A stretch of 64,000 nucleotides of DNA from Oopsacas minuta (Eukaryota > Animalia > Porifera): assembly GCA_024704765.1 (NCBI GenBank), contig JAKMXF010000340.1, positions 159,911-223,910 of the forward strand. Reading direction: 5' to 3'. The position numbers were made by a program, and so were the translations under genes. This document shows, one piece after another, positions 35,932 to 63,427 of the stretch. The notes beneath the pieces were generated by a model. That model had not been told where the DNA came from, searched no databases, and saw only the letters and a list, made by a program, of their open reading frames with translations. How positions within the stretch are numbered: position 1 is the first letter of the stretch; every line of letters starts with the position of its first letter.

Positions 35932-36705
35932 GCCTATAGATTTCGGGAATAGTAAAGTTTCTTTGAAAAGAGAAGTAGATTTGTAGAGAAATTCTATTTG
36001 CAATTAAAAATTGCGCGATACTTAGGAAAACTTCTGAAGCGGTTAAATACTCATGGGTATATCCAATGTTAGCCTTCAAGAGCTCTTCATTATACCTCTA
36101 TTACTCGTTTATGATCCTTATATATATTATTATATTGTTAAATCTGCATACAGCTATCTACGTTGAATTGTTTTCAGAGGGCATGTCCCCCAAAATCACT
36201 CACTCCACCCCACTAAGTGATCTCAGAATCCGGAAGGGAATCTGGTTCAAAGAACAGATACTTTGCATGCCTATGAGCTACAGCCCCCTCAAATAGTGAA
36301 AGTTGCTTCGTTCTTGAGTCAGGACAGGCACCTAAGTGTCAGTTCAGCATCCATGAAGGACAAAAATTGCCGACTATGAGACTAAAATTTGTATAGGATA
36401 CTATGTTCCCGCCCAAAAGTTTCTCCCCAAGGGGGCAAGAATGGTGTCAGCCAGAAATTCCTGAATAAACCCCTGCCTCCCATAGACTGCAATACATCAT
36501 ATGGCCCCTGCTCTTCTCAGTGGACCCCAAGTTGGGAACCGTATGATATATAAAAAATTGAAATGAATTTTTCATAAATATAATGTTGAATATATTTCAA
36601 TACAAATATGTTTTGTAAGTTAAATAACAGATAAAATGTAGAAATAAATATTTTAAAGATTAAAATAGAATTATTACATATATGAAGTTAGTGAATAAGG
36701 TTTAA

Positions 36706-39700
36706 TTATAATCTAGTGTCTCTAAATCCAGATTCATCTTGTGAAAAGTCTACATCAGAGGATTGCATCACTTTTGAAGCATTAAGCTAGAGTGTATATA
36801 TATATTTAAAGAGAAGGCTATATTCTTATGAAATTCACAAATAGTTGGTAATATTGAATAATAAGAACTATACTAATTGACGGAAGTTTCGCTAGCTTAG
36901 CTATGCTCAAGCCTGATAGTTCTTTGTACAGCTATTAATATAACTAACCTGAGTAAGACGAGGGGAGTATCTAGCACTAGGAGGAGTCCTTATAGAATTC
37001 CCATATGATAAGCTAGAGTTAGCAATAGAAGCTTGTTTGGAGCGAGATGAGAAGTCTAACGTATTAGAACGGTTCTCCTACACACAAATTAATATCAAAA
37101 TTCTGAATCTACGAACAAAATTTTTAGCTAGAATGGCCCGCTTAAATACTCTTCCTTTGCTATGATCGTAATAAACCGGAGGTTTTTGAATACAGTAGAA
37201 TCTCAATTTAATGGCTATTACAATTGCGAGATGAGGCGACGATCGATAAAGTGAGGCGGTAACTGGCCTCTTTGCCTCAATGCCAGTTATGCCATTGCTT
37301 TGCTCACCACATTTCTAGAATCGGCCCGATCTTATCAAAAATTGCATGCACTTCCAGATAGCATCCTTACGAAGTGACTATACCCCATGAGCTTCCTTAC
37401 CCAGTAGCGGTCCTAGGGGTTGGAAAATAGGTTATTGGACAAGGTTTTGATTTTGTGCCTCGGGCAGCCGCGGGTTTGCCAGATACTCTCCAAACGTTCC
37501 TGTTCCTGTAACATAGAATGTATTTGTGGAATTGAAAAATTAAGACAGGACAAGTTGAGATATCTAGACCTAACTAAAATCCAAATTTGGTCAAAACCAG
37601 GAGCTGTTTTCGCTGGATAGCATAAGCGCAAAGTAGGCCCATGAGTCTGGGTGGGAAAAGATGACGTCATGCCAACCCGGCCTATACCCTATGTTGTAAT
37701 GGAGTCAAACCGGGTGGGCACGTGCTCACCAAAATAGCACCTAGTTGCGCGTAAACTTACAAGCATTAAAGACTCCTGTAGTGTAAGGTCAGAGAGTGGA
37801 TCATCAAGCCTACCATTGGTAGCAGCTAATAGTGGAGTGTGTGACTGTGTTCTGTACTTCTCTCTTTCCTTCCTTGAAGAGAGTATCACAATACAGAATA
37901 CGAACAGACACAGGAACAGAACTAAAAGAAAAACATGGCGATAAAGTAACAGGGGTGTAGGAAGCGAGTTCTGAGGCGAACTTAGTTGCCCGGCTTCAAG
38001 GCCGTGAGTAGTTAATGATTCGTTGATAAGTTATCACGAGTACTTAGTTATGGAAAATTTTCAGATGAAAGGGTGGATAGGTAGGAGCTGCCCTGTTAAA
38101 CTTTTAAGAAAGATGGTCTATTATATTGACGGAATGTAATATCCATCCCTCCGTGTGTTTGATCCTGTGAAATCTAACACTCCAATTAACATGAAAATGT
38201 GAATACAGGTATATTGTAGAGTATAGATGTGTACCTGGGGTCTAGAATTTCCGAAAATGAGAATTTTTCATACCTTTTGGCAATAAAACATTACACTTTT
38301 GAAAATAGTTGAAATTAAAGATTCTAATCCAGATAATACGAATTAGTGGATTGAAAAGTGTTTCGAGAATTCCACTCATTTTGGGCAAACTGTATGTGAA
38401 AGAATGCACACCAAATTAACTGTATAACATTTCTAAACTGACCTGCCAAGAATATGATCACTACAATTATTATTATGATAGCAACAAGTGAGGTAACAGA
38501 TACTGGTGTAGTTGGCGTTGTTGTTACATTAAGAGTTAAGCTTGGTGTTGTCAGTGAAGGATCTGAATGAGAAAAAATATATAACGTCTACATTATATCA
38601 GTGTTTCATAAATTTTGGTTATGTAGCGATCAGGGTTTGGTAATGACATATTTTGGAGTGTACGTGCGCTGCAGTGTGTGCACTCCTTCAAAAATGGAGC
38701 GCTGCTCCTGAATCATGAATGGAGTGTGCTCCAGGTCCCGCTCTTTGTAGCACCATAAGCTCTGTATATCGAAACAATATCAAAATATCAAAAAACAAAA
38801 TTATAGACATTTTCGATTACATTTTCAATATTTTCAGATTTTGGTGCTAATCAATTGATCACTTACCAACACAATGAGGTGCTGTCTCTATTAGAACAAA
38901 GTTCGCTTGCTCTACACTCCCTACACTGGTAACAGCCTTCACTTTGAACTCGTAAGCTAAATGAAATATTAATTAAGAATAAACGTGTAATCCTGTTGAG
39001 TAGCTGATTACTCACAAGTTGAATAAATAAGATCTTCTACTGTCTTTGTTGTAGCAATAGTAGAATCTAAAACCTGTCTATCGACAAGGAATTCAAAGTT
39101 CTTCAGTAATCCGTTGAGATGGAAAACATTAGACCAATCAATTGTCACTGTGTTACAGAGCCTGCGTACACTCAGTGTGTCTCTTACCTCAGGTTCTAGA
39201 TAATTTTCAGAATATAATTAAGTATTGGGAGGTAAGCGAGGGGTAATTGTAATAGAATGTTGATGACAGTAGAATCTACTAGGACACCGGTTAACCTGGT
39301 TAATCGGGTCACAAAAGACAGAAATAGAAACATACCAATGGTCTCAATTGATTCCCGTTAATCGGGTCAATACCTTTCTCTACGCTTAATATGGTCAAAA
39401 TGGCCTGGTCCCGATGTGACCCTATTAAGAGGAGTCTACTGTAATGACGTCACAATTACAAATTCTTCCCTAAGATTCAACCCGCAATTACTTTACAATT
39501 ACAGCAAACAAATTTCATAATAGCCCAAGAACACTGATTCCGAATATGATATTGTACAAACGTATTATGAAGATTCAATTTGTTGTTGTTGTTATGTGTA
39601 TCAAATACACAAATATTAAAAGTTCCAGAAAGTGTTCAACCGTTATATTGGCGTAATCGAGTACGCTAACCCCGAACTTTCAAGTTTTCATATGTAATTT

Positions 39701-42700
39701 GTTATTGTTCTTATGAAAACGATAATCGAGGTATAAAGTGTCAAGTTCCTAAGAATGTTCGAAAGCCGCGGAGCACAAGCAAGCGGAGCGGAGTCGTTAC
39801 TTGGATAATCCATTACAATTGCAATTACAATAGTCAGGTGAGTCTATTCAAACAAAATTGTTAAACTAACAGAACACAAACTAAAATATAGTCCGCCAGT
39901 AGTTAAGAGATAACAAACACAATCTCTGTATCAGGGACAGACAATAATATAGCCTCATGAAATTGAGAATATAATTTGAAATGAGTATCCTCATTGGATT
40001 AAAGGCTGTGAGAGACTAGTGTACGAAGAATTTATAGCAAATGATTACAAATTAGATGATAAGATATTATGGGAATGGTAAAATATGTGAAAACACAGAT
40101 CCTTCGATTATCGATACAAAAAGGTAATTTTCCATTTATAAGAAATTCGGGTATGTAGTTTACCTGCAGAATCAGTAGTATAGAATCTAGAAGGAGGAGA
40201 TTGTTGTGCTGAATGACTATTAGCTGCAACCAAGAAGAATTGGTATGTAGCATAAGGAGTCAATCCTTGAGCTGTACCAGACAGGATATCTCCTGCTCCT
40301 GTGTAGAAAGTAGTTGTAGTACCGTACTGACAACTGCCTGGATTGATGTGAGGCTGTGTGGGCTGTGGGCAAACAGACTGTGCAAGGATAGAATAACTAA
40401 AAGATTCAAGTAAATCAATTTTCAATACAGTGTCACCTCCACAAACGAGGTGCCAGAGAAACAGAAAAATGCTAGAAAGTTGCTACACTTTGTAAATACT
40501 TGACAACTTACCTGGTGAGAATTCCATTAGGTTTAGTAGGTAATACCCATGTGAATACAATTTCCCGAGCAGAAATGATGTCAGCAACTGGCGGAGATAC
40601 TCCTTCAGGTGTATACTCTCCTGTACTGAGTGCAGCTGCCTCACTAGTAGCACATCCTGCCACAGTACATGCTGTCACATTTATATAATAGATCGTGTAT
40701 GGAAGTAGGTTTGTGATAGTGGTAGTGTTCTCCGTGCCTAATAATGGAAGAGAATATCTATGATAAAGTTTGTAAGGATCTAAATGAATTCGTAACTTCG
40801 GTCATAGATAAAATATACAGCTATATATGTGCAGGAGAAGGCCAGTTTCATTGTCATCAATTTTAGAAAACGAAACTCATATTTTAGACTTTTGGTGCTT
40901 CAAGATACGTATGTATAATCCATTGCGATCACTTATAAAGCCCAAACGGCCATCTTTCATTTCATTTGGACGAAATTTAAGCAATTAGTTAGCATTAACA
41001 TATCTTGTATAATCTATAATTTCGTATACAAAATGTTTGTTAGAGATCTCTACGGTCTAGTGTTGGTATACACCAGGGTTGCCGTGGGTATGGGAATTCC
41101 ACAGAAATTCTGTGGGAATGCGATGGGAATTGTAACATCCGTACCCACGGCAACCCTAGCAAACCAGATATACGTATAAGTAATTACCTGTCAATTCTGC
41201 TACTTGCACATCATCTCTGTACACAATATAACTGGTAATAATACCATTAGTTGTTTCTGGAGGTAAAATGAAAAGTGTAATAGAAGTATGTGTGCTTGAA
41301 AGTAACTCTGGTGGAACCACATCCATCGGTATTCCCTCTACTGTACGCACCGTTTCCCATTCACTAACTGCCTGTCCAACAGTGTTAATAGCTACAACTT
41401 TATATTGAAAATCTGTATATAGCTTCAAGTCAGTGGAATTATCAATAATGAAAAGTTGATTGTATACAATTGCAACTAGTATTTCATCTGAAAAAGTTGT
41501 CTGTCCATTTACATTGAAAACTTCTCTACGGAAAACTCTATATTCTGTGATAATACCATTAGGCATATCAGGTGCTTCCCATTGTGTGAGGACAGCAGGA
41601 CCTTGCAGTGCAGTCAGTGTCGGCACAGGTTGTCCAATAGGTGTATCAGGGCTAGTAACGACTGTAGCGATCTGACTCTCTGTGCATGTAGTAGTACATG
41701 CACGTATCATAACGTTATACATTGTAAACGGCTGCAATTCAGTGACAATATACTCAAACTGTAGCCCAGTGAATACCACTGTATTTTCAACGAGTAGATC
41801 ATAACGTGTTATAAGACCATTTGGTATTTGGGGTACAGACCATTCTGCCTTGAATGAAGTGGAGGTCAACGGAGTGAGTGTAGGCGCGTCGAGTAACTCG
41901 GGTGCATCAGGCGACGTGGTTATGACAGTGCTTTGACTAGGATCACTTCTCCCTATCGAAGTATACGCACGTATTGAGTATACATAGGTTTTAGCCGGCC
42001 GTAAATTTGTATCTGCAAATTGCCTGTTCTGAGTATTGTTAGTAAACAGCACTACACTACCGTTCCTGATTACGTCATAACCAATTATAACACCATTCGG
42101 CATAGATGGTACTTGCCAAGTTACCAAAGTTGACTTACTGCTTGTAACACTGACTACAGGAGCAGGCTGTCCAGAAGGGATATACTCTAAAGTCAAAATA
42201 TTCGAAGTAGGACCTACACTACAACCTATAGCAGTACAAGCTATTATAGCAATACGGTATATAGTGTAAGGTGATAGGTTAGTTTGAGTGTGTATGAAGG
42301 GTGTTATTGTATTTGATTGATCAACGTCATCAATTGATAGCATATACGATTGTATTACACCATTTGGTTTCGTAGGAGGGTCCCATCTAACCTCTACCTC
42401 AGAGAATGACACAGCTGTAAGGCTAGGAGCGATTACGCCCTCGGGAATGCTCTCAAGTGTCTGTTCCACTGTGATCTCACTTGTAACACAACCTCCACGG
42501 CTGTTACATGCAGTAATCTGATAGCTGTAGTCCGTGAACGGGTCTAGATTAGTATCAAAATACACAAACGCATTACTCAATGATACAATAGTATTACCAT
42601 CACGTATTACGTCATAATTGGTTATTACACCATTCGGTGAGGAGGGTGTTGTCCACTGTATACGCATTTCAGTGGCGAGCACCGCTTGAACGTTTGGAGC

Positions 42701-45700
42701 CGCAATACCTTGAGGTACTCCTTCATCTGTTTGCTCTGAAATGAAATCACTCTGTGTAAAGCCAACACTGTTCTCTGCAGTGATAGCATAACTGTAGAAT
42801 GAATAAGGTAGCAGGCCTGTGTCAATGAAGTTACGTAGAGTTATATTAAATACAGTGTGTATTTGAGAAAGTGTGTTATCAGGGTCCATACGATGTATTA
42901 GAAATCTAATTATGTTACCATTCGGACTGAGTGGGAGTTGCCAAGTTATACGGATAGAAGAAGAACCTAACGTCTCAAGGAAGGGAGCATTTAAATTATC
43001 TGGTGGGATTTCCGCGGTTGTCAACACCTGTAAATCACCATTAGTGCAGCCGGCTGAAGTACAAGCTTGTAAGTATAATTCATAGTCAGTGAAAGGTGTC
43101 AAAAGTCGGTAAGTAAACGAATTCGACACACCCCTAAAAATAGGATTTACTCCAAGATATATCAGATACTCACTGATAACACCATTCGGTTTCAGAGGTT
43201 CATTCCATGATAAATCTAATGAACTACCAGATGGATCAGCTGTGTACATAATAAGCTGTAAGAGCTCAGGGCTATCTTCAGCTGTCGTCGCAGGTACCCA
43301 AGTTGTGATAACCTGACCTATACTATTATTAGCTGCTATTCTAAACTCATAACTAGATCCAGGTTCAAGATCTTGTAACTGTGTTGAGGTTGTACTACCG
43401 TTAACTGTTAACAGCAACACAGGGTCACGGTTCATTGGTATCGGGTTAAGGGGTGTGGTAATTATACGTGCGTATATGTGGTATATTAATATTATCCCAT
43501 TAGGTTGAGCAGGCTCATCCCAGTTTAATATTAAAGAGCGTGCAGTAACAGATGACACTGTAGATGCAGCGAATAACATTGGCAATGCTTCTAATGTACT
43601 TTCGGATGCTTCAGCACTTGTGACACTACCTGCGCTATTACGTACTTTCACAGTGTATGTGTAGAGTGTGAAGGCATTTAGGTTGTCAATATCTATCATG
43701 TTGATCTCAGGTGGGACTGGGATTTGTAATGGCGGTTCATTGGCTGTGGTTTGTAATAGCTCATAACCTATGAGGATACCATTGAGAACAGCTGGTGGAT
43801 TCCATGATACACGTATTGAAGATGAAGATAACGCCAATAGAAATACAGGATCTATTCCAATAGGTGGTGCTTCTAGTGTTGTAATTAATACTGCATTAGA
43901 GAGAGCACAGCCACTACGTGTGCAGGCTGATACACGGAAACTATACTGTGTAAATGGTATTAGCCCGGTACGTGTAAAGCTGAGCTGTGTTGTATCTGTT
44001 AATGTAACGAAATTGACGTTATCCTGATACAAATCGTATTGTATTATTACACCATTAGGAAGTGTGGGTGGTATCCATTCGAGGAAAACAGCTGTAGCAT
44101 TCACAGCTGTCAAAATAGGCGGGTCTAACCCAGAGGGCGTCGAATCGGGTGTAGATACTGTAGCGGCCCCACTAATGACAGAACCTACATTGTTAAAAGC
44201 CTCGATTATGTAGCTGTAGGTTGTACTAGCAAATATGTCTGTGTCTATATACGTGAAATTAGTAGTGTTCAATATTATGACGTCATTTTTGCGTAGCAAA
44301 TAATACTGTATTATACCATTAGGTGAACTGGGTGGTGACCAACTTATCTCTAATTCATCAAATCGTATAATCGTTAGAATAGGCGGATCGATTGTAGTAG
44401 GAGGTATTTCAGAGGTAGAGAATGTAGTCGGTGAGCTGGATACACATCCAAAGCTGTTACAGGCTTCTAGAGTGTATGTGTATTGAGTGAATGCATTTAG
44501 TCCTGTAATAGTAGTTGTTAGTGCAAAACCTGTAAATATTGTGTTGCCATCTGAATCGTATATTGTGTAATTAACAATGATACCGTTAGGAAATAAAGGG
44601 TTAGTCCATGCTAATTCGATGCTATTCGGAGTGATTAGAGTTGCGAAAGGTATATCTAATAACTCGGGAGTACTTTCAGATGTTTTGGTAGAAACTGCGT
44701 CACTTCTTGTACAACCAATAATAGTGCAAGCAGATATCATATAAGTAAAAGTGGTGAAGGGCAATAAATTCATATCTGTGTATTGAGTGCTATCATTGAC
44801 GGTAGCTATTTCTTGGCCATCTCTATACACAATATAACTTATGATAATGCCATTAGGTTGTGTGGGGGCTGTCAATTGGATTCGTATTGCAGTAGCTGAT
44901 AACACTGTAAGAATAGGTGGGTTAATATCAGTTGGAGTGAATTCAAGAGTAAGTATAGAAATCTCAGGGCTAATAGTCTCTCCTGCTGCATTTGACACCC
45001 CAACGTATGCTAGATAATTAGTGAATGGTGTCAACCCTGTTACACGATATGATAAATTGAGGCCAGTGAAAACCGCAGTTGTCTGATAACAAATTTGTGT
45101 ATTAGAATTCAATAAGTCAATACTATCGCATGTATGTGTTGAAAATGGAAAATCGCATCGATTACAATAGGCTGTGCTTGACTGTGCATTAGGACACGTG
45201 ACACCTGTACCACAGTTGGCACCAGTTGATGTAGACCTATCAGAACATGTCTCCAGCTGTGAATTATAACCACGGTTATTACAACATGATAATTGTGAAG
45301 GGATTGCCGTGACGTCACAACACTTCTCATCTGCGTAAGATTTATTTGCTGGACTTGCGTATGAGATTACCTAGGAATAATAGAGAAATCAGCAAATATT
45401 CTCAAAACTAAACACAAAGCAGGCGAAATATTACGCCCTAGACAACTGTGATATTGTTCCGCCATTCACTCAATTTTCAGCATTGAAGAGTAAAATTTCT
45501 AAATTAAAAGATTATACCGCTGGCCGGCCGGCTACCCCATAATAATAAGTGCCACCCTAGGAGATTTCCTAGTTCGCTTAATGGAAGGACTGGTATTGGA
45601 TTTTCCCCATTTTATCGAGATTTTTAGATTTTATTAGGTTAGCATTAGTAAAGTATAGCCGTCACAGTAAATAATACATCTAACACGTTTCGAGGAATAC

Positions 45701-48700
45701 TGTAAATAACACTTACCCTCTCTACCCCATTACTTGCCGCACAACACAGAGTTACATTATCAAGCTCATAACTCGTATCACAGCAAACATATCCATCTCT
45801 ACTAGAATAAGTAACTCCATTACAACAGACTGTATCAACATTAGATACAACTGTTTCTCCACAACACATTGTATTTATGTGCTGTGATACAACGTTACCT
45901 CCACAGCACATAAAGTTATCGTTATCAGTGTAGGGAGTTGTACCGCAACAAGCATCACCTATAGAGTGAATATACTATTTGATTTACAAGGATAAAAGTG
46001 CAGTACAGTTCGCATAATAGAAATTTGTGTATTCGCAAGGGAAATTCAAATAGGATTAGCTGATCGGCGAACTATACTGCATTTATAGATCCAGTTGATA
46101 CGAATAACGATAAGACGAATATTTTGGCTGTTAATTGGTGTACGCGTTCTAATAGTATATGTACGAAAATTCAAAGACCCTGTCTTCCGAGTTCTACTGT
46201 ATATAGTATTGGAAAAAAGTGTTCAAGATTATCATGTGAATCCATTGCTCCAAATTTGATCTCCCTTACCTGATCCTACATTAACTGTATTTCCATCATC
46301 ACAGCAGATATCTCCAGGTCCTATAAACTGATACACACCTCCACAACAACCATAATCACTTTGGACATCGTAGAAACTACCTCCACAACACACATCACTA
46401 ACTGACACACGTTCAATATAAGTACCACCACAACATGCGTGATTATCAGCTTGAGGGTACAGTGTATCCTCACAACACACATGTGTTGATGCTGTATAGC
46501 ACTGATATCCACAACTTGACTGTCCTAATGGACAATCTACATAGTCACATGTATCTTGATCTGTGCTCTGTGAGCAGGGTATCACATAGCGGAGATAGAG
46601 AGAATAGCTTGTAATATCTCCGTTTGTGACAGTGGGAGCAGCTAAATAGAGTTAAATAAACAAGTGTTTCTCAAAGTAGCCCCTGTGATTATAATAGTAG
46701 GGACAAAAACTTAGAAATGGTTGATATTATGATAAGCAATTTGTGGGTGCTGGCAAAATATACATGTATAATTATGGACCCAGGCGAAGAAGATTGAGAA
46801 ACTTCACAAAATCTTCGGTTAGCTGTGTACGTATTACCTACCCCAATTAGCAAGGAATGAATCATGTTGTACATCTGATACATTAGGAGAATCAAATCCA
46901 GTGGGAGGAGATTGTAGAGTACGAATTGAATAGGAATCACTTGGAGTACATTCAAATCGAGTACAAGCAACAAGCTATATAAAAATAAACTAATATAAAT
47001 TATATATTGATAATGTTTACGAAAAGCGAAAGTAAAAAGCGATTAGTGGTCCCAACCTCTTCACCCGTGGTCCCCCTATACCAATTATAACACATGTTAA
47101 GGGCATCTCCCGCAGACTGCAACAGATCCTTTCATTCCTGTGGACCCCCTGCTGTCCTCCATGGACCACCAAGGGATCCATAAACCCCAGGTTGGGAAGA
47201 GTTACATTGGATATTTGAAAATTTTACTTGAGGAATAATTTTTCAATGACGGAACCAAAATATATGTACAGTGGAGTCTCCGAATAACGGACACGTTGGG
47301 GTATGGTATCTGTCCGTTGTAGAGAATTGTCCGCTCCTCGGAGACTGCTTAAGTATTAATTACATGCTTGGCGAATTCAATCCCTGCAACGAGGTTTATC
47401 CGTTGTAGGCGGTTGTCCGCTTTACGGAGTGTCCCTTTTGGGAGACTCCACTGTAAATACAAACATCTTCCAACAAACCTCAAATGAATATACTGTATAA
47501 GGCATCAATCCCATAGCTATAAACACTCCACTAAAATTATCAGTATATACAGATACACCATCTAGTATGATGTTATATGACACAATAACTCCATTAGGTT
47601 GTTCAGGCTCTACCCATTCAACTTGAATAGCTGTTGAGCTTATGGCAGTGAGTATAGGAGGGAATACACCTTTAGGTGCTCCGTCTAGTGTTGTAGCCTC
47701 AGCAATGTTGCTCGTGGCGTATCCAACTCCATTGAAGAGAATTACCTAGCAAAACAGTAAACAAGGTATAGAAATGTCTATAAACAAAAATTGATATAAA
47801 TTTGTGGTAACTAGGAATATTTTCGGCTAAGGTATGAGGAATGAAAAATTTCCAAAGCTCATTTTTGGAACTAAGGTTTGGAGAAGCCTTAGAATGAAAT
47901 CCAACTGCATTTACGAGAAATTATTATTTAGCCAATGATATTAAGATAGAAGGTTCTCAAGCCGCGCAGCGCAAGCAAGCAAGAGAAGCTGCTTGTGCGA
48001 GATTAAGTATGGGTTAAACAAACCTGAAATCTATATGTAATACTTGGATTCAGTCCAGTAACAGAAAACATATTATCTGTTCCATTGAAGAATGACATAA
48101 CAAACTGTCCAGATCCCACCTGATTGCCTATAACTTCAAAATTAACAACCTCACCTCTCACTACATCAATACTTGGTGTCATCCATTGAAGGAGAATAAT
48201 AGAGCTTGTGGTAGTAGTGGCATTGAGTGTAACGCCTGCTAATGGTGTATCAGCTAGTGTTCGTATTTGACTTGTGTTACCATATGTTATGGTGCCTGCT
48301 CCGTTGGTTACATCAAGGGAGTATTGATATTCATGGAATGGGAGAAGTGAGCTGTCATTGTAGCTTAGGAAAAGACCTATAAAATGGAAATATTCTTAAA
48401 ATACGAAATTGAAAGAATTTTCATGAAGAATGATGATAAATATCCGAAATTTTGGATAGACTAAACTTGATTAATAAGTACTCGAAGAATAGAAAATTCG
48501 AGAACTATATATCATGAAATCTGGGCAATTAATACCATTCAACACAACTTTCTGACAATTGGTATATACCTTGAGCTATCTGGACATAATCTCCACCATC
48601 TTCTCTCCTGAATAGGGTATAATACATAATCAATCCATTAGGCATTGTAGGCTCAAGCCAAGATATCACCAGCTCAGTAGATGAAACAATATCAACATTA

Positions 48701-51700
48701 ATCTCACTGAATCCAGATGACAATACTTGTCCGGTTTGGATAACAACAACATCACTCTCAGTACAACCACCAAACGTACAAGCTGTAATACTAATACTAT
48801 AATTCTGATATGGAGATAGATCGTGTAATGTGAAGCCTGTCAAGCTTGGATGTAATCCTATGATGATCAGGTTTGGTAGGTCAGTAGGTTCGTATTTGAG
48901 TATATACTCAGAGATGATACCGTTTGGCACTGCAGGTTCTAACCATATTATTTGTATTGAAGTAGGTTGTATTAGAGTTAGTGTAGGTGCTTCTATAGAA
49001 GATGGTTCTAGGAAAGAAAATGTGAGAAAAATTGAGAGAATGAGAGTCAACATACCAAAATTGCAGCTGGGGTCATTTCTTAAAAAATTACCATCAATGA
49101 ACTTGCAGGGACTTATGTGACACTATGATATACTGTATATATAAATTCTAGAGCATTTGTACACACCTTTAAGAAATACAACATTTTGCCAATTTAGAAT
49201 CCAAACGAGAAATATTTTCCCAAAAATCGCAATGACTGAAGGTGACGCATGGTGCATGAGAAAGGGAATCCACTGTGTAGGAAGTTGGAAGAGTTGTAAA
49301 ATTATAAATAGGAAGGGAAAATGTATGCAAATATTTTCAATGAACTAATATACTACAGTCAAAAGACATTCAAGAAATGAAAAACGTCAAATTAATCCAA
49401 AATCGTTATAGCTGAGGCATTTCGTAAATTTTGATTGCATACAAATAATCGCAAACATTTTACTCAAAATAAGTAAACTTACGCGTTTGAAGAGTGGTAA
49501 TATTCGCATACGAACTAGCTATACTCCCAGCACTATTCACAGCCACAACACGGTAATGTACAAGTAGAAATGGTGTAAGCACATTCTCATCACTATCGAT
49601 ATACATAAGCGTATCATTAGCATCAAGTGTTGCTATTTGTATAGCTGCATCTGGTGGTAACAGTCTTTCTACGAAGTATGTATGTATTATGCCGTTAGGG
49701 GATAACGGGGTGTCCCAGCGTATTACTACTGAAGTAGATGATGAACTCTCCAGACTAGGTGGAGATAAATTCTCAGGAGCTGAAAGAATAAATAAAATAT
49801 AATGAAATCAGGTGAGTGAGAATTAAGTATCATGCGCTTCAAAACATCAATAAATGTAGGAAACAATTTTCGCGAAGAATATTAAGTCAGGAATGTAAGT
49901 GACTGCGCACAAGTGGCGGAACAAATACTAGGTGCATTATCTGGCGCTATCTACACCACTGGATCAGATTCAGATCCTAGATTGAGGGATTTTCTTAGTT
50001 TAACCAATAGTCAAAATTCTGACAGAGCTTACACACCCCAAAGGGAGAGCTCCCATAATGTAATGAGTGTAGTGTTCAATTCAGCACCGTTTTAAGTCCC
50101 CAATCTGCCCCTTGTCCAATAAATGTAAAACATTAATCATCTCCTTTATCAACATCTAAAATATAGTAGAATACTACATTCTTGAGATATTACGTATATT
50201 AATGGATAAAATAATCATTGGGTCATCTCCTAAAAGTAAAATATAAGTGGGAAAAGTTTGTACTATTAAATCTCAAATCTATTAGAATTTCTCATATTAC
50301 ACGATAAAGAACAACATTACGTCATCTCCTAGTAAATTTCAGGGAAGACATAAATGTTGAGTGAAATTACAATAAATTACATCATCTCCTAATAGTAATA
50401 TTCTGACAATCAAGTAATAGTATATGTCCAAGCTAATGAGTATAAAATCAAGTTTCCTAGACAGAAATACAAATAAGGTTTTGGAATTATTGTTACAAAT
50501 TTCAGAAAAAAGTTAATTTGCAATCAGTGACACTGATCTCGGAATAGTCATGAAGAAAATCGGTAATATATGCCTATTGTTAGGTTTGGTGACGTATTTG
50601 TATTATTATGCAGTGGTTGAAGCTGTCGATTGTTCTACTGGAGCAGGATATTGTAATTATTATAGTAACTATCTACGGTGCTACATCACCAATAATGAAA
50701 CTCAGGGTATTAAGAGTTTGTTAAGTTACTGTAGCGGTCAGAGCACAGGATTTGTTACAATATATGTGTACAAAAACTACCTATCAACAGTATACGGGAA
50801 TCTAATCATTGATATAGAATTAGCCTCAAATATCCAATTTTTATACATTTACTATTCCAGAGATCAAGACAATATCCGTTTAACTACATCTAGTCAAAAT
50901 ACTGGATTAACGAGGATATATAGTAACTATCATATCCAGCTCGAGTCTGGTAACTTTTTCAATTACTTCACAGGTCTAAAGTCTATCTACACGAGTTATT
51001 GTATTACAAAAGAAACACCATCTTTCACAAATCTGCAATATCTAACTTATCTCTTCGCTAGAATAATCGGTTCGTCCACGCGTACATTTGATAACACAAT
51101 CGTTAGAGGATTATCAAACTTGGTTGTCCTAAGTTTCTATAACTCGGATTTCAATGGAATAACTACAGGATCATTGGATGGCTTGAACTCGTTAACTTTT
51201 CTGAGCTTCCAAAACAATAAATTAAGTAGTATTGAGGATGGAACATTCGATGAACTCCCAAGCCTATTAACACTCCATCTTCAAAATAATGGACTAAGGA
51301 TTACCTCAAATAATGTTTTCGAAGGTTTAAATGAACTGACAGAAATGAGATTAGATGGGAATCCAGGATTTCCTATTGAAGCACTGATACATACAAGATC
51401 TCTAAGGTATGTGAACTTACAGTACAATGAGTATCATACGCTAGAGCCGTATGTATTCCAGCAAATGAAATCACCAAGCAGCATCCATATATATTTAAAC
51501 GACCCGTTCATCTGCGACTGTAGATTACAATGGACCTCAATTGTATCGCAATATGGAGTATATATATATTATGGATTATGTTCTGAACCAAACATTTTCT
51601 CCCAAAAGTCTATAACTAATACACAGTTGTATTCAAATTGCTCACAAACAGAATCTTATCAATGCTTTAACAAATCGATAACCTGTCCTAGTAATCAAGT

Positions 51701-54700
51701 ATGTCATAATACACAAGATGGTTACTTTTGTAATTGTCCAAGAGGATATTCACTGCATAATTCAGGAGAATGTAGAGACTTCGATGAATGTGATGAGGAA
51801 ACTGAATGCGAGCATACCTGTGACAACACACAAGGTTCATACCATTGTGGATGTGAAGAAGGATACGAGCTAGCTACTAATGGGTATGACTGTGAAGATG
51901 TTAATGAGTGTCAGGAATGGAATGGAGGATGTGAGTTTGGTTGTAGCAATTCCATAGGTTCATATCAGTGTTATTGTGAGTATGGACACAAACTTTATAA
52001 CGAAACTCAATGTGAGGAAAGTATAGAATGCGAATTAATGGGAGATAGTTACAATACTTCCCTGGGAAGTAGTTTTACTTGTAAAGGGGGATTCAATATA
52101 TCCATCTTCAACCTTTCTTGTCTGAGTGTAAATCCTCAAGAAATCATTCTATCTAGCGAAACTACATCTCAATCAACAATCCTGTCAACAAAATCTGAAT
52201 TTGGGTTGGCCATCCCAGCATTAGGGCTAATGAGTATTTCGTTAGTCTTCAATGTATTTCAACTAATCGTTATCATATGCTTACTCGTTTTTGTTATAAG
52301 AAAGATGAACACAATGCAAGGTGCCTCAAAGCTAAAAGATGCAAATGATCCTCATATCCACAGCAATCCGTATTACAATGAAGCAATGTATAATTCAATT
52401 GATGAATTGGAAAATCAAGAAAGTTCTACAGCAGTTACTGGCGAGACGAAGGCAAATCTAAAGAATCTTCCCAAGTTTCTGGCACCTCAAAATTATCCTG
52501 GGATGCAAGATGAAATTGCAGATTATGAGACTTTGTAATATAGCCAAGTTTCTCAAAGCTATTACGGACATTAGTTTATTAAACAGGACTAAACTATAGG
52601 TTTGTCCTCATAGTGTGATTACATAGGTCTCCCCAGTATTGTATATTTGTTAGGTTTACTCTTGTATTTGAGTGTGATGATAGTTCTTAGATTAGATACC
52701 TGTATTTGTCAGGGAATGTCGTGTTTGATTAATTATTAGTTGTGTGCTCTATCTTTGCTTTATATTACAATTAATGGGATGACAATAACTAGCAGTAGGG
52801 GTGGTATATACTGTTACGGCGAGAATCGTACGAAATTTCACGTAACATTTACTTTTTTGCCTTGAAGGTTTCAACATCTATGTGTTCAGAGAAGAAATGT
52901 TACGACTTTAGTATAACCGGTGTCAGAGGGGCAGTGGTCCTCCGGGTGAGCTGTCCCCCCGGACTTGTGGCACTAGGGTGATATGTCCCCCGGACCTCTG
53001 GCACTAGGGTCAGTAGTCCGAGGGACATCTGACCCAAAGTGGGGACTACTTACCCTAGTGCCAGAGGTCCGGGGGGACACTCCACACTAGTGCCATTCGT
53101 CGGCGGGACTCCTTGCCCTAGTGTCACTAGTCCGGGGGACATTTGGCCCTAGTGCCACTAGTCCGGGGGGACAGAATTTAGGGAGGACACATGACACTAC
53201 CACACAGGGAATAAATAACCATGAATTATACATATATTATAAAGTTGAAACCTGTATAATGTTAGTATAATTCATATACATATATTATACAGGTTTCAAC
53301 TTTATAGTATATGTATAATTCATAGAAAAATTTAGTGAAGGCATAAATATTGTGTGAAATCACAATAATTTACATCATCTCCTATAGAAATATTCTAACA
53401 ATCAAGTAATAGTTGTCCAAGCTAATGAGTATAAAATCAAGTTACCCAGGCAGAAATGAAAATAAGGTTTTGGAATTATTGTTACAAATTTCAGAAAAAA
53501 GGTAAATTGCAATCAGTAATACTCATCTCAGAATAGTCATGAAGAAAATGGGTAATAAATGCTTGTTGTTATGTTTAGTGATATGTTTGTATTGTTATGT
53601 TGAGGTTGAGATGTCGGATTGTAGAAATGAAGCAGGTTTTTGTGATTATTACAGAAGCTATCTCGAGTGTTACATTTTCAATAATGAAACTCAGTATATT
53701 AAGAGTTTGTTAAGCTACTGTAGCGGTCAGAGCACAGGATTTGATATCATAATTGTGTACAAAAACTACGTATCAAGAGTATACGGGAATCTAATCATTG
53801 ATATAGAATTAGCCTCAAATATCCAACGATTGAAAATTTTCAATCTCAAAGATCAAGATTATATCCGTTTAACTACATCTAGTCAAAATACTGGATTAAC
53901 GAGGATATTTGTTAGTAGTAGTTATAATATCCAACTCGAGTCTGGGAACTTTTTCAATTACTTCACAGATCTAAAATCTATCTTCGTGGGTTATTGTATT
54001 TCAAAAGAAACACCATCTTTCACAAATCTACAATATCTAACTTATCTTAGCGTTAAAATAGTAGGTGTGTCCCTACGTACATTTGATAACACAATCGTTA
54101 GAGGATTATCAAACTTAATTTACCTAAGTTTCCATAACTCGGATTTCAATGGAATAAATAAAGGATCATTGGATGGGTTGAACTCGTTAACGCTTCTGAG
54201 CTTCCAAAACAATAAATTAAGCATTATTGAGGATGGCACATTCAGTGAACTCTCAAGTCTGTTAAGACTCAATCTTCAAAATAATGGAATAAAGATTATA
54301 TCAAATAATGTTTTCGAAGGTTTAACTGAACTGACATACCTAAGATTAGATGAGAATCCTGGATTCCCTATTGAAGCACTGATACATACAAGATCTCTAA
54401 GGGATGTAAACATAGAGTACAATGATTATCATACTCTAGACCCATATGTATTCCAACAAATGAAATCACTAAGCAGAATATATTTAAGTGATCCGTTCAT
54501 CTGCGACTGTAGTTTACAATGGACGTCAATTGTATCTCAATATGGGGTAAATATAAATAATGGATTTTGTTCTGAACCAAACAATTTCCTCCTAAAGTAT
54601 ATTACAAATCCAAAGTTGTATACAAATTGCTCACAAACAGAATCTTATCAATGCTTCGACAAGTCTATAACCTGTCCCAGTAAGGAAGTATGTCATAATA

Positions 54701-57700
54701 TACAAGATAGTCACTTTTGTGGTTGTCCTATAGGTTATCTGCAACATAGTTCAGGAGAATGTGTAGATGAAGATGAATGCGAAGTGGTAACTGAATGCGA
54801 GCATGCCTGTGAGAACACAAAAGGTTCATATAATTGTATATGTGAAGAAGGATACAAGCTAGCTAAAAATGGATACGACTGTGATGATGTTAATGAATGT
54901 CAGGAATGGAATGGAGGATGTCAGTTTGGATGTAGAAATACTATAGGTTCATTTGAGTGTTATTGTGAGCTAGGACACCAACTCCATAATGAAACTCATT
55001 GCGAGAGTAAGATACAATGTGACGTAGTAGATAGTAATGGCTCTCATGAAAATAGTTTCAAATGCCAAGGAGGATTCAACCTTACAATCACGAATCTGAC
55101 TTGCTCAAAAATGAGTGATACTACTCGACATGTTACAACCGTTGCTATAAAAGTGACAACAAATACTACGAAAGTAATATGTGTTCTATCAGTTATCATT
55201 GGAATTCTACTCATTTACATAGCAAGACAGAAGAGAAGATCGCAGAATGTCATGACAATTGGACAAGAAACCAAAAACATGGGAATTATTGCAAAAGATC
55301 GCAATATTCTCACAAACATCACTGCTGATTGTTATAAACATTCCATGATGCCTACCAAGGATATGTTTCCTCATCCGAGAAGTATAGGACAGCAAGATAC
55401 TGTCGATATCGAGAACAATAAATGACATCCCAGTTACCATTGACTCTATTTGATATTATCTATAACTATAGGTTAACCCTCATAGTGTGTATATTTACTC
55501 CTCCCCGGTAATGTATACAAGATACTCACTACCTTTAAGCTCTGTATTCCTATTTAGTCAGGGATTATTATGTTTATGATTATACTCGGGGGAATGGCAG
55601 TAGCTGACTATATATAAATCGATTTTCCATTATAGGTTAAACAAGCCTAAACGGCCCAACTCTGCTTAAGAAGCTATAGTGGTTGGTGACTTATTAAGAA
55701 ACCACTGCTTTACCCGTTATGATACAAGAGAAATAGGAAACTTTGTGCTTGTGGCAAATATTTTAACAATGTAATATACATTACTAGTTCGTTGAAAACT
55801 ATATCTAGGACTGGACCTAATTATAATTCAAGCAAATGTATTTACCAAATTTACTTCAATATTCGTATTGGGTGATTCTTTGCACGAAAATAGGAATATT
55901 ACGAACACTATTCAATATATATACAGCGGAGTCTCCAAATAACGGACACGTTGGGGGCATAGTTACTGTCCGTTGTAGAGAATTGTACCTTCTCGGAGAC
56001 TGCTTAAAAAGTAATTACATGCTTGGAAAATTCAATCCGTGCCATGAGGTTGTCCCTTGCATGGAGTTGTCCGCTTTTCGGAGTGTCCGTTTTGGGAGAC
56101 TCTACTGTATATAAAATCAAATGTGTTTAGAGTCTATTGGAACACTTAGTAATGTATACTTTCTGACTTCAGTCAGCCAAATGGTAATCAATCCCCTGGG
56201 ATCATTGCTAAGATCTATAATATGATTACATGATACAGGTGTAATACTAAACTCTATGCTAAGAGTCAGCAATCATAAGTAACAAAAGTACGGGTAGTAT
56301 ATATTATTACATATATGATAGGTATTAGTCTCCAATGTTGTGAGGGTAATACTCAGGTTATAAATACAATAATCTCTGAAGAAATAATACAAACGCATCG
56401 AAGACAAATATACAAGAACTCTGTTAGTGGCTGAAAACTAAAAGTAATAGTTACTCGTTATGAAGAAGGAGGTAATATATGTCTGTTGTTAGGTTTGGTG
56501 ATATGTTTGTATTGCTATGTTGAGGTTGAGATGTTAGATTGTAGTAATGAAGCAGGGTATTGTAATAATGGTACTGACAATCTCAATTGTTACATTTCCA
56601 ATAATCAAACTCAGTATATTAAGAGTTTGTTAAGCTTCTGTAGCGGTCAGAACACAGGATATGTTTCAATAGCTGTGATCAAAAACTACGTATCAACAGT
56701 ATACGAGAATCTAATCATTGATATAGAATTAGCCTCAAATATCCAATATTTATCCATTTCCAATTACATTTACAAAGATCAAGATACTATCCGTTTAACT
56801 ACATCTAGTCAAAATACTGGATTAACGAGGATATATGTAAATAGTAACTATCATATGCAACTCGAGTCTAAAAACTTTTTCAATTACTTCACAGGTCTAA
56901 AAGACATCTTCGTGGGTTATTGTATTTCAAAAGAAACACCATCTTTTACAAATCTACAATATCTAACTTATCTTAGCGTTGGAATAGTAGGTTCGTCCAC
57001 GCGGATATTTGATAACACAATCGTTAGAGGATTATCAAACTTGATTTACCTAAGTTTCTATAACTCGGATTTCAATGGAATAAATAAAGGATCATTGGAT
57101 GGTTTGAACTCGTTAACGCATCTGAGCTTTAGAAACAATAAATTAAGCATTATTGAGGATGGTACATTTAGTGAACTCTCAAGTCTGTTAGGACTCCATC
57201 TTTCAAATAATGGACTAAGGATTACCTCAAATAATGTTTTCGAAAGTTTAACTAAACTGACAAAACTGAGTTTAGATGAGAATCCAGGATTCCCTATTGA
57301 AGCACTGATACATACAAAATCTCTAAGGTCTTTAAACTTACAGTACAATGATTACCATACTTTAGACCCATATGTATTGCAGCAAATGAAATCACTAAGC
57401 ACTATATATTTAAACGACCCGTTCATTTGCGACTGTAGATTACAATGGACGTCAATTGTCTCGCAGTATGGGTTAAATATAAGTAATGGATTTTGTTCTG
57501 AACCAAACAATTTCCTCCTAAAGTATATTACTAATCCACAGTTGTATTCAAATTGCTCACAAACAGAATCTTATCAATGCTTTAACAAGTCTATAACCTG
57601 TCCAAGTAATCAAGTATGTCATAATACACAAGATGGTTACCTTTGTAGTTGTCCAAGAGGATATTCACTGCACAATTCAGGAGAATGTAGAGACTTCGAT

Positions 57701-60700
57701 GAATGTAATGAGGAAACTGAATGCGAGCATACCTGTGTCAACACAGAAGGTTCATACCATTGTGTATGTGATGAAGGATATATGCTAGCTACTACTAATG
57801 GATATGACTGTGATGATGTTAATGAGTGTCAGGAATGGAATGGAGGATGTGAGTTTGGTTGTAGAAATTCCATAGGTTCATATCAGTGTTATTGTGAGCA
57901 TGGATACCAACTGTATAACGAAACCCATTGTGAGGAAGGTATTGAATGCGAATTAATGGGAGATGCTTGCATTAATCCCATAGAAAGTAGTTATAATTGC
58001 AAAGGGGGGCTCAATGTATCGATCTTTAACCTTTCTTGCCCTAATATGAATTCTCAAGGAAACATTGAATCAAGTGAAACTACAGCTCTATCAACAGTAG
58101 GGCTTATGAGTATTTCGTTAGTCTTCAATGTATTTCAACTAATCGTTATCATATGCTTACTTATTTTTGGTATAAGAAAGATGAACACAATGCAAGGTGC
58201 ATTAAAGTCTAAAGATGCAAAAGATCCTCATATCCACAACAATCCTTATTACAATGAAGCAATGTATAATTCAATTGACGAATTGGAAAATCAAGAAAGT
58301 TCTACAGCAGCTACTGGCGAGACGAAGGCAAATCTAAAGAAACTTTCCAATTTTCTGGCACCTCAACATTATCCCGGGATGCAAGATAAAATTGCAGATT
58401 ATGAGACTTTGTAACATAGCCAAGTTTCTCAAAGCTATTACAGACATTAGTTTATTAAACAAGACTAAACTATAGGTTTGTCCTCATAGTGTGATTACAT
58501 AGGTCTCCCCAGTATTTTGTATTCACTAAGTTTACTCTTGGATTTGAGTTTGATAATATTTCTTAGATTTGATTCCTGAATTAGTCAGGAATTCTCTAGT
58601 GTGATTACTATAAGTTGTATGCTTAATCTTACTCTCATATGGCTCATGAGTTCAACGGGACATTATTTCTAAAGGAAATTGGGTAATATGGATTTGGAAC
58701 ATTGTATGGAATAGGACTCAAATATAGCGCAACCTCTATAAGTGAGGCTTCTCCTAATTGGGCAAGGGGACATCAATTCGGGGGGCAATTTTGGTCGACT
58801 TTCATTCATTTCCATAGAAACGAACTTCTGTGAAAAAGGAATAAAGCATACTTTAAAGGAAATTATGCGATAAAATTTCTTGAATAAATATAATCAATTT
58901 TTGTGCTAAATTTGGAGAGAACGAATTTATTGCTTTGATGAATTGAATCTTTTTGGTTTCTCTGAATAAAATTTCTTTGTACAGTATACTCAACCAAAAA
59001 CCTTAGGGAACATTATAATAATCAAAATCATTAAACAACAGTCGTTAGAGGAAGTGGCTATACATATTGTCTCAAAATCTCTGGTTATAGCACATTTGTA
59101 ATTGAATTTTGTATTTATGGGAAATGGGGCTTATAAGGAGATTTGCCGTCCCGAACTCCCATACTTATAGAGGTTCTACTTTGTATCGGGATTATCACAA
59201 ACCTCGAAATCAAGTACGCAGTATACATATTTATCTACAATGCTGATAATATAAACTAATTTACCATCTTCTAGTGTAGTTACAATTACGTCATCACTCC
59301 TGAAGCATCCAACAGCAGTACAAGCTTCAATAGCAAAACTATACTGAGTGAATGGAGTAAGCAATGGAATAGTACTCTCCAGTGTTCCAGAACTAACAGT
59401 AGATATTTCTACACCATTCTGTATGATGATATACTGTATTAACTGTCCATTGGGGGTAGATGGAGGTACCCATGATAATTGTACTGATCTAGACTGTACG
59501 TCACTTATAGTAGGAGCTGGCAGATCCTCAGGGACTATAAAAGGGTTGGAAATAAATCATTTTCATTATACATCAAGCTAATAGCTACAGTGTAAATAGT
59601 GTATCGATACTCGATAGGGAATTCACATGCAACACTCTATGTAGTGAAAATTGCATAGAATATTGGAAATCGATCATTTTTGGAAATTTTGAAATACAGG
59701 TAGTTTGCATACAGTGCAACCTCGACTATCCAAACTGGAGTATTGTTCGGATAATCAAGGATACACTGTAATAGGAACAAGAAGTATAATAGCGCATTTA
59801 CAGCGTCTATCATTCGTTTATTGAAATGGGGCATTTGACAAACATTCCTATACGAGATCTTTTAGTATGTTTACTGTCATCCAATACATGAATTTGAGCC
59901 AACTTAGCCCAAGTAATCATTCTCCAAACTCTCAATTAATTCCGCTAATAGTGAATGCATGGATGTCATTCAAAACAGCAAAGCAATGCAAATTTCAATG
60001 TAATGTAGTTGGCATAGTAACAGACATGGTCCAAAGGAATTTTCAACATTTTGTTTGATAACTCTACACTTCACAAATGGATATATCACTCATTTCAAGC
60101 ATCAAATCCAAAGACAAATATACCCAGCAATTGAAAAGATAAATCATTGAAAACTAAAAATGACTATACTTTAGAACTACTTCAGATTGAACAATTCTAA
60201 GAGGATTACACCACGAAGGAGATTACTAGAAAGAGATGCTTGAAATACAGTAGACCCCGCTGAATAAAGGGACAGGATAATCTGAGTAAATAGTGCCCCT
60301 ATAAGCTCATCAAATATTTAACCATGGCATAGTTCGCATATCTGCTTGAATGATATATAGGTTTGTTTGTTTGGGTATTTCCCTTTGATTAGAGACTATG
60401 ATTGCTTGGATGTTGTCAAGGATTTTTGATGCGGGATTATAGGGGGAATTTCTATAAAGCATAAAATAAAACAAAATCCACCATCCATGGTTAAATATCC
60501 AAAAGCATATAGAGGAACGATTTTTGTCAAAACGACCCTATTAAGTGGAATCTATGTGTCTATTGAATGTGATATATTCCTAATTTGTCACAAAGCACTC
60601 TCTCAAGAAGGAAATTATCATGAACATTTGATAAAGAAAGAAGTTGAAGAACCTTTAGTAAAAGGTATAGTTATTGACGAAGCGAAGCAATGCTGTGTTG

Positions 60701-62974: not shown

Positions 62975-63427
62975 CTATATAGGAGATAACACATATAAGT
63001 AATTTAATAAGATTCCACTTATATTTCTGCCAGATGTTTCTATTCACTTTTCAGTGTGTTGAAAGGTCACTTTTATTCTGAAGGAATGAAGTTTTTTAAT
63101 ATAAAATTCTCGCAGACAATATCGGTCGTCAACATCTAAGTAAACTGTTCAAGAATCAGCCAAGCCAAAACATTGTAACAAACGAGTCTCATGTAATTGT
63201 ATGCATTACTATATTAATAGACAATTGTAACTCAATACCACCAATATAATTATGTAATTGTTATAATATTACTGAAATAATGTAAGGAGAATTATGTAAT
63301 GTGTTTATCTGATTTAAGGGATTGGTGTAATAAAAATATAATTTTCTGAAAGTATGCAAGCAGCGCAAGATGCATATCGTACAGTTCACGTATAAATATA
63401 AAATTCTAAATATTTAAAACATTTAAA

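Follow-up and report, generated by a model that had tools for sequence, protein, structure and literature searches.

The 3' end of an usherin gene lies on the minus strand of a 64,000-nucleotide (nt) stretch of the Oopsacas minuta genome (contig JAKMXF010000340.1, positions 159,911 to 223,910, hereafter the window). Positions 38562 to 36706 encode the stalk, the membrane span and the predicted cytoplasmic tail of the protein. These limits were given in an initial annotation of the DNA and are exact: 38562 is the first base of the exon with the stalk and the start of the span, and the stop codon ends at 36706. That annotation had also raised the possibility of an early-branching animal, and the gene does belong to a glass sponge (hexactinellid), matching the O. 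minuta protein KAI6647638.1.

KAI6647638.1 (LOD99_8712, UniRef100_A0AAV7JFI0) has 2518 residues, carries the database name "hypothetical protein" and is placed on the window from 49780 to 36709 (minus strand) at 97-100% identity. The O. minuta genes were predicted by BRAKER/Augustus with mapped RNA-seq reads (PMC10280926), and the genome paper mentions neither usherin nor Usher proteins nor PDZ (PMC10280926). Sponge usherin and this gene model were already public before the present analysis. On the homology described below, KAI6647638.1 should carry the name usherin, and the public record is corrected in that the "hypothetical protein" is the C-terminal part of usherin. The model is confined to 2,518 C-terminal residues and lacks the gene's N-terminal part. 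LOD99_8712 begins at about 49,800, just downstream of a nested LRR-EGF gene cluster, and a same-strand FN3-coding open frame lies upstream of this start at 62496-63047 (minus strand). The public annotation seems to split usherin into at least two gene models (window 49780-63047, minus strand). Upstream of the LOD99_8712 start only FN3 was seen within the window, and no N-terminal laminin-type domains occur in the window; in a related sponge contig (L002, introduced below) a LamG pair lies upstream of the FN3 exons.

Exon structure and conservation of the 3' end

Six short exons with canonical splice sites, here called C to H, lie between a 1318-residue open frame and the stop codon. The open frame is a giant FN3 exon (41156 to 45112, minus strand) with 13 Pfam fn3 matches (E 2.4e-112). 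The exons were searched and aligned singly, and the joined sequence used was the public protein KAI6647638.1. All six are on the minus strand, and a slash marks the exon boundary in the splice sites given here. Exon C (39195-39016, 180 nt, phase 1 at both ends, acceptor AG/AA, donor T/GTGAGT) encodes the first part of the last FN3 domain and equals residues 2267-2325 of the public protein. Exon D (38956-38867, 90 nt, phase 1 at both ends, donor G/GTAAGT) encodes the end of that domain and equals residues 2327-2355.

The four exons that follow encode everything from the stalk to the C-terminus. Exon E (38562-38443, 120 nt, phase 1 at both ends) encodes the stalk and the first half of the membrane span (...VTSLVAIIIIIVVIIFLA); its acceptor is ttcAG/AT (ttctcattcAG), its donor is G/GTCAGT and it equals residues 2357-2395. 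Exon F (37921-37761, 161 nt, phase 1 to phase 0) has the acceptor ttttAG/TT and the donor CTT/GTAAGT and equals residues 2397-2449. It encodes the second half of the span (LFLCLFVFCIVIL), SSRKEREKYRT and DLTLQESLML, the translation after the hydrophobic run being SSRKEREKYRTQSHTPLL...DLTLQESLML. Exon G (37077-36949, 129 nt, 43 codons, phase 0 at both ends) has the acceptor tgtAG/GAG and the donor CAG/GTTAGT, equals residues 2450-2492 and encodes a Ser-rich segment, ENRSNTLD...NSSLSYGNSIRTPPSARYSPRLTQ, ending in ...YSPRLTQ. The coding part of exon H (36786-36709) equals residues 2493-2518, i.e. the C-terminus, and reads LNASKVMQSSDVDFSQDESGFRDTRL, an acidic and Ser-containing patch followed by a class I PDZ-binding motif. 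The stop codon TAA (36708-36706, minus strand) directly follows the motif and leaves a free carboxylate. The reverse complement of 36706-36738 is GAT GAA TCT GGA TTT AGA GAC ACT AGA TTA TAA, which translates as D-E-S-G-F-R-D-T-R-L-stop, so the ..ESGFRDTRL end of the initial annotation is read correctly.

The phases are consistent throughout, with split codons between D and E (G+AT) and between E and F (G+TT) and phase 0 junctions between F and G and between G and H. Exons E to H, taken one by one, reproduce the contiguous C-terminal residues 2357-2518 of KAI6647638.1 residue for residue, and the single residues of that protein before exon E and between E and F are the split codons. The tail had initially been described as three small exons that were missed. 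There are four coding exons (E, F, G and H), the Ser-rich exon G apparently having been left uncounted, and the public annotation already contains all four. Exon E (phase 1/1) and exon G (phase 0/0) are symmetric and each could be skipped in frame. Skipping exon E would leave a hydrophobic run of only about 14 residues; since exon G is 129 nt long and in frame, its omission leaves the reading frame intact.

Five close relatives of the giant exon (L001 to L005, 63-77% identity) lie on large ENA contigs and were examined together with the 10 kb that follow downstream. By tblastn, exons C, D, F and G are collinear in 5/5 relatives and exon H in 4/5, the sequence of L005 stopping short of it. The low-complexity exon E was located in all five by local protein alignment. 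The acceptor AG and the donor GT are retained at homologous positions in every relative genome, exon C is kept in L001-L005, and the DNA identity of exon D is 73-85% in L001, L002, L004 and L005. In the four relatives with a readable end the motif is followed by TAA, as GFRDTRL in L001, L002 and L004 and as GFRDTKL in L003. Compared with four relatives by the Nei-Gojobori method, exons F, G and H together give a ratio of nonsynonymous to synonymous substitution rates (dN/dS) of 0.08-0.20 at a synonymous rate (dS) of 0.9-1.4; the ratio is 0.10-0.15 for exon F, 0.07-0.24 for exon G and 0.08-0.31 for exon H, where dS reaches 1.4. Alignments of the six genomes have 20 invariant columns in exon F and 24 in exon G. 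At the DNA level only the exons and 50-120 nt past the stop codon align by blastn, and the introns do not. Synonymous sites are near saturation while the protein is retained, and the exons are under purifying selection. The exons, their junctions, the stop codon and the terminal motif are real and selectively maintained.

One further block of the tail is kept as well as the C-terminal motif. DL[TS]LQESLML at the end of exon F (37761-37790, minus strand) and E[NS]RSN at the start of exon G are invariant or nearly so in the six glass-sponge genomes.

Usherin orthology, membrane span and C-terminus

The window gene is an usherin (USH2A) orthologue, as judged from homology searches and domain order. 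The matches of the giant FN3 exon include the usherins of hamster (32% identity over 97%, E 1e-257) and opossum (E 1e-234) and a JGI "usherin", and every named match is usherin or an usherin-like protein. Single-ORF counterparts of about 1400 residues occur at 97-99% coverage in hundreds of animal assemblies. A reverse search with an usherin-type query recovers KAI6647638.1 among the usherins (E 8e-227). The FN3 array also contains a galaxin-like Cys-rich insert (PF24748) at residues 555-685 of the 2518-residue sponge protein (window 46235-46585), and a hamster usherin fragment of 2093 residues has PF24748 at residues 95-214. The insert lies about 1,830 residues from the C-terminus in the sponge and about 1,880 in the hamster. 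Named usherins as matches in both search directions and an insert at a like distance from the end uphold the earlier assignment of this tail to usherin. The orthologous vertebrate protein (USH2A long isoform, ending ...TTFTDTHL) shares the giant FN3 exon and the galaxin-like insert about 1,850 residues from the C-terminus.

The stalk encoded by exon E is Ser/Thr/Pro-rich with one NVT sequon, and an O-glycosylation-type stalk is proposed from this composition. The strictly apolar run that follows has 29 residues in O. minuta (LVAIIIIIVVIIFLAVLFLCLFVFCIVIL) and is interrupted by the phase-1 intron that separates exons E and F, an arrangement kept in six of the six glass-sponge genomes. In every bilaterian usherin examined the span has 23 residues, interior Ser/Thr/Asn counted. 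The hydrophobic stretch, initially called unusually long at about 30 residues, is indeed longer than its bilaterian counterparts. It is followed by SSRKEREKYR, a basic stop-transfer sequence, and by a tail of 107 residues to the end. With the ectodomain predicted outside and the PDZ ligand inside, topology would require one span, which is read as a single long and probably tilted helix. The putatively cytoplasmic half of the span contains one Cys that is invariant in 6/6 genomes and a second in 5/6; that they are candidate acylation sites is speculation. Long spans as a habit of this genome were also considered. Seven other membrane proteins of the window have uncharged hydrophobic runs of 15-25 residues vs 36 here, so the long span is not a general property of the genome, although the sample is small. 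The lengthened, intron-split membrane span of glass sponges appears to be a modestly new detail.

A class I PDZ-binding motif has the form X-[S/T]-X-hydrophobic-COOH. The O. minuta C-terminus, ...SGFRDTRL, follows this rule with T(-2), L(0) and the stop directly after. The resemblance of DTRL to the DTHL of human usherin, pointed out at the start, extends further, because F(-5), D(-3), T(-2) and L(0) also occur in the usherins of vertebrates, molluscs and echinoderms. These four positions are invariant across 14 aligned usherin ends from glass sponges to mammals, while position -1 varies (H, P, Q, R, K). The molluscs end in REQTVFTDTHL (Batillaria, Solemya), KEQTVFTDTHL (Mercenaria) and KEQMVFTDTHL (Dreissena), and the sea cucumber Apostichopus ends in KEQTMFTDTHL. 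Coelacanth, fishes, hamster and opossum end in ...[KR][ED]HT[TMV]FTDTHL. Three frog usherin models end in FTDTPL and one bat usherin model in FTDTQL, so position -1 is free to vary even among vertebrates. A metazoan contig (L006) ends in EHTTFKDTHL. This 17-kb Logan contig (SRR31358904, 1-17193) holds an almost intron-free usherin with a one-piece span of 21 residues and a complete domain set (LamNT, laminin-EGF, FN3, two LamG and further FN3). It has 32-33% identity to its best named relatives, and apart from the five close relatives no sequence matches the glass-sponge exon better.

The sponge and vertebrate usherins are alike in having a single span, a short tail and a class I end with F(-5), D(-3), T(-2) and L(0). 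They differ at position -1, which is R/K in the sponges and H in most vertebrates, and at position -4 (R vs T). The tail has 107 residues in the sponge vs about 135-170 in vertebrate usherin, and the sponge span of 29 residues is split by an intron vs 23 residues in vertebrates. Bilaterian usherin has a juxtamembrane PY[IE]RERPPL block which is not recognisable in the sponge tail; only a Tyr at +9 from the span is common to both, and this is weak evidence. A search of the PDB sequences for a solved relative of the tail gave only chance matches (E >= 1). Within the glass sponges conservation of the end spans about 17 residues, SSDVDFSQ[DE]ESGFRDT[RK]L, which include the acidic, Ser-rich patch and whose extent fits an extended PDZ ligand or phospho-regulation. 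Vertebrate tails contain an internal GLADT[KR]I (hamster fragment, about 1990-2000; GLTDTKI in fishes) that resembles GFRDTRL; the BLASTP E value is 0.69 and the likeness is probably due to chance.

Predicted PDZ docking and its alternatives

Taken together, it is likely that this locus is the 3' end of the O. minuta usherin gene, that the encoded tail is a predicted class I PDZ docking site, and that the coupling dates at least to the sponge-bilaterian ancestor. The predicted topology is based on the FN3 ectodomain, the one hydrophobic span and the basic cluster after it (positive-inside rule); no signal peptide occurs in the window. We infer a type I protein with an extracellular FN3 array and a cytoplasmic tail. 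D-T-[R/K]-L would dock in the peptide-binding groove of a class I PDZ domain, which would tie the receptor to a submembrane scaffold and thereby to actin. Extrapolated from expression in demosponges, the likely site of action would be the microvillar collar of the collar bodies. On this reading the coupling would be at least as old as the common ancestor of sponges and bilaterians, and the match of the terminal hexapeptide probably reflects a protein-anchoring signal dating to early animals. The retention of the terminal residues while the rest of the tail has diverged argues that the part of the predicted cytoplasmic domain conserved as its core is the PDZ coupling.

In vertebrates, whirlin, harmonin and PDZD7 hold usherin at the ankle links of stereocilia and at the periciliary membrane of photoreceptors. 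Usherin, ADGRV1 and the PDZ scaffolds make up the hair-cell ankle links and the photoreceptor periciliary complex, and defects in them cause Usher syndrome type 2. Glass sponges differ in cellular setting from demosponges such as Ephydatia, having syncytial tissue with collar bodies in place of choanocytes. Whirlin binds both the usherin and the ADGRV1 motif through its PDZ domains, and the ADGRV1 tail is a ligand of harmonin and PDZD7 too (PMC12969115). ADGRV1 (VLGR1) is likewise a giant adhesion receptor with a C-terminal motif bound by whirlin, harmonin and PDZD7 (PMC12969115); it belongs to another protein family than usherin, with Calx-beta repeats and seven transmembrane helices.

According to Peña et al. 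2016 (PMC4942974), sponges have usherin and VLGR1 orthologues, VLGR1 being reported in choanoflagellates as well. The fellow sponge orthologue in the demosponges Ephydatia muelleri and E. fluviatilis is enriched in choanocytes, as is VLGR1, and both are strongly depleted when choanocytes are removed. The same paper reports two whirlin homologues and harmonin in Ephydatia, which are likewise expressed in choanocytes or reduced along with them, proposes a role in the collar with usherin and VLGR1 as a collar link, and already argues that usherin is older than hair cells and a possible linker of collar microvilli (PMC4942974). Its account of Ephydatia usherin, to the extent available, describes neither the tail nor a PDZ motif nor the membrane span. 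A literature search found no statement on an usherin PDZ motif outside vertebrates, and the antiquity of the receptor-to-scaffold coupling was not found addressed. The modest new points suggested by the alignments are the conservation of the docking residues as far as glass sponges, across molluscs and echinoderms, and the R/K at position -1 in glass sponges. The result is a real, modestly new detail of a known system and the gain is incremental.

Several points weigh against an ancient PDZ coupling of usherin. The sponge span and tail compared with bivalve and hamster tails by BLASTP give a best E value of 0.023, and this match lies in the membrane span. With no significant similarity between the tails, homology of the whole tail is not claimed. 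Because the rest of the tail is dissimilar, homology of the motif rests on its position and on four identities among the last six residues. The differences at -1 (R/K vs H) and -4 (R vs T) could shift PDZ specificity. About 3-4% of random C-termini fit the class I motif, which makes the motif weak when it stands alone without conservation. Many core metazoan genes are also reported as lost in the O. minuta genome (PMC10280926). The window itself contains no whirlin, PDZD7, harmonin or NHERF-type gene.

The identity of the partner has a serious alternative. NHERF/EBP50-like adaptors link membrane proteins to ezrin and actin, and the sponge end may be a working PDZ ligand whose partner is such a microvillar adaptor, or a PDZ protein of sorting such as SNX27, and not an Usher-type scaffold. 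A NHERF/EBP50-type adaptor has to be taken seriously since DTRL is identical to the last four residues of CFTR, the textbook ligand of NHERF1 PDZ1 and PDZ2. The NHERF/EBP50 ligand pattern is matched by D(-3), T(-2) and L(0), and R(-1) is tolerated or preferred. The two ends share R(-1) and D(-3), which in CFTR forms a salt bridge with Arg40/Arg180 in the PDZ domains of NHERF1, and they would share a microvillar scaffold context (PMC7866199). The Arg(-1) ligands -ATRL, -PTRL and -DTRL are among the listed PDZ1 binders (PMC7866199). The tail of vertebrate ADGRV1 pulled down NHERF2 and SNX27 (PMC12969115). CFTR is unrelated to usherin, so this likeness bears on candidate PDZ binders and not on ancestry. 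However, PDZ domains are promiscuous and a NHERF-type partner does not exclude Usher scaffolds. Bilaterian usherins with H(-1) do bind whirlin, harmonin and PDZD7, and -1 is the variable usherin position. An exclusive NHERF- or SNX27-type partner is therefore possible but rather doubtful.

The resemblance to DTHL could also be convergent, glass sponges having gained a class I end independently from an ancestral usherin without a PDZ ligand. Outside the motif the sponge tail shows no detectable similarity to those of bilaterians, a short C-terminal motif can easily arise, the readable non-bilaterian ends are those of the glass sponges and contig L006 only, and a sea-anemone model ends in unrelated sequence. 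However, that model includes Pfam domains of transposon type and was probably mis-joined when predicted. Two of the 4/6 identical last residues, F(-5) and D(-3), are not demanded by the class I rule, and the motif is at the C-terminus of clear orthologues that share their architecture. Convergence is improbable on this evidence.

There is similarly little chance that the conserved C-terminal block has another role, as a signal for export or sorting or as an acidic cluster regulated by phosphorylation, and fits the class I pattern only by accident. The roughly 17 conserved residues do exceed the four-residue PDZ core and include the Ser-rich acidic patch. However, the only positions shared with bilaterians are the PDZ-groove contacts (0, -2, -3, -5), extended PDZ ligands commonly use upstream residues, and the vertebrate motif is experimentally a PDZ ligand (PMC12969115). 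It is also unlikely that the four-exon end belongs to one isoform only, with exon G or E skipped or another terminal exon in the main transcript: exons E and G are both symmetric cassettes and a three-exon version remains in frame, but each of them is kept at low dN/dS in every relative, the RNA-seq-guided public model includes all four, and no further conserved block lies between exon D and the next gene.

A broader form of the PDZ-coupling reading can be put forward only tentatively. F-x-D-T-x-L may be an ancestral, animal-wide docking signal that anchors microvillar links of the collar bodies via a whirlin/harmonin- or NHERF-type scaffold. The ankle links would then have descended from a collar linker, and the intron-split span of 29 residues, peculiar to glass sponges, would be an adaptation of the anchor to the collar membrane.

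Minor features and neighbouring gene

The start of the 3' untranslated region (36586 to 36705, minus strand) aligns at 71-77% with L001, L002 and L004, and this block may be a conserved element of regulation or of the 3' end. In the window neither of the poly(A) signals AATAAA and ATTAAA occurs at 600 nt or less from the stop codon. Relative L001 has a second, isolated exon-D-like fragment about 3 kb past its usherin stop codon (L001:22429-22493, 65 nt at 80% DNA identity).

The window also has an intronless gene for a ZnT/SLC30-type zinc transporter at 3690-4805 (plus strand) with Cation_efflux and ZT_dimer domains. Its closest relatives (71-78% identity) are on the same ENA contigs as the usherin relatives; therefore, the linkage of the two genes is conserved. 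The best named match is "Zinc transporter 2-like [Oopsacas minuta]" at only 62% identity over part of the protein, and the copy in the window may be an unannotated paralogue.

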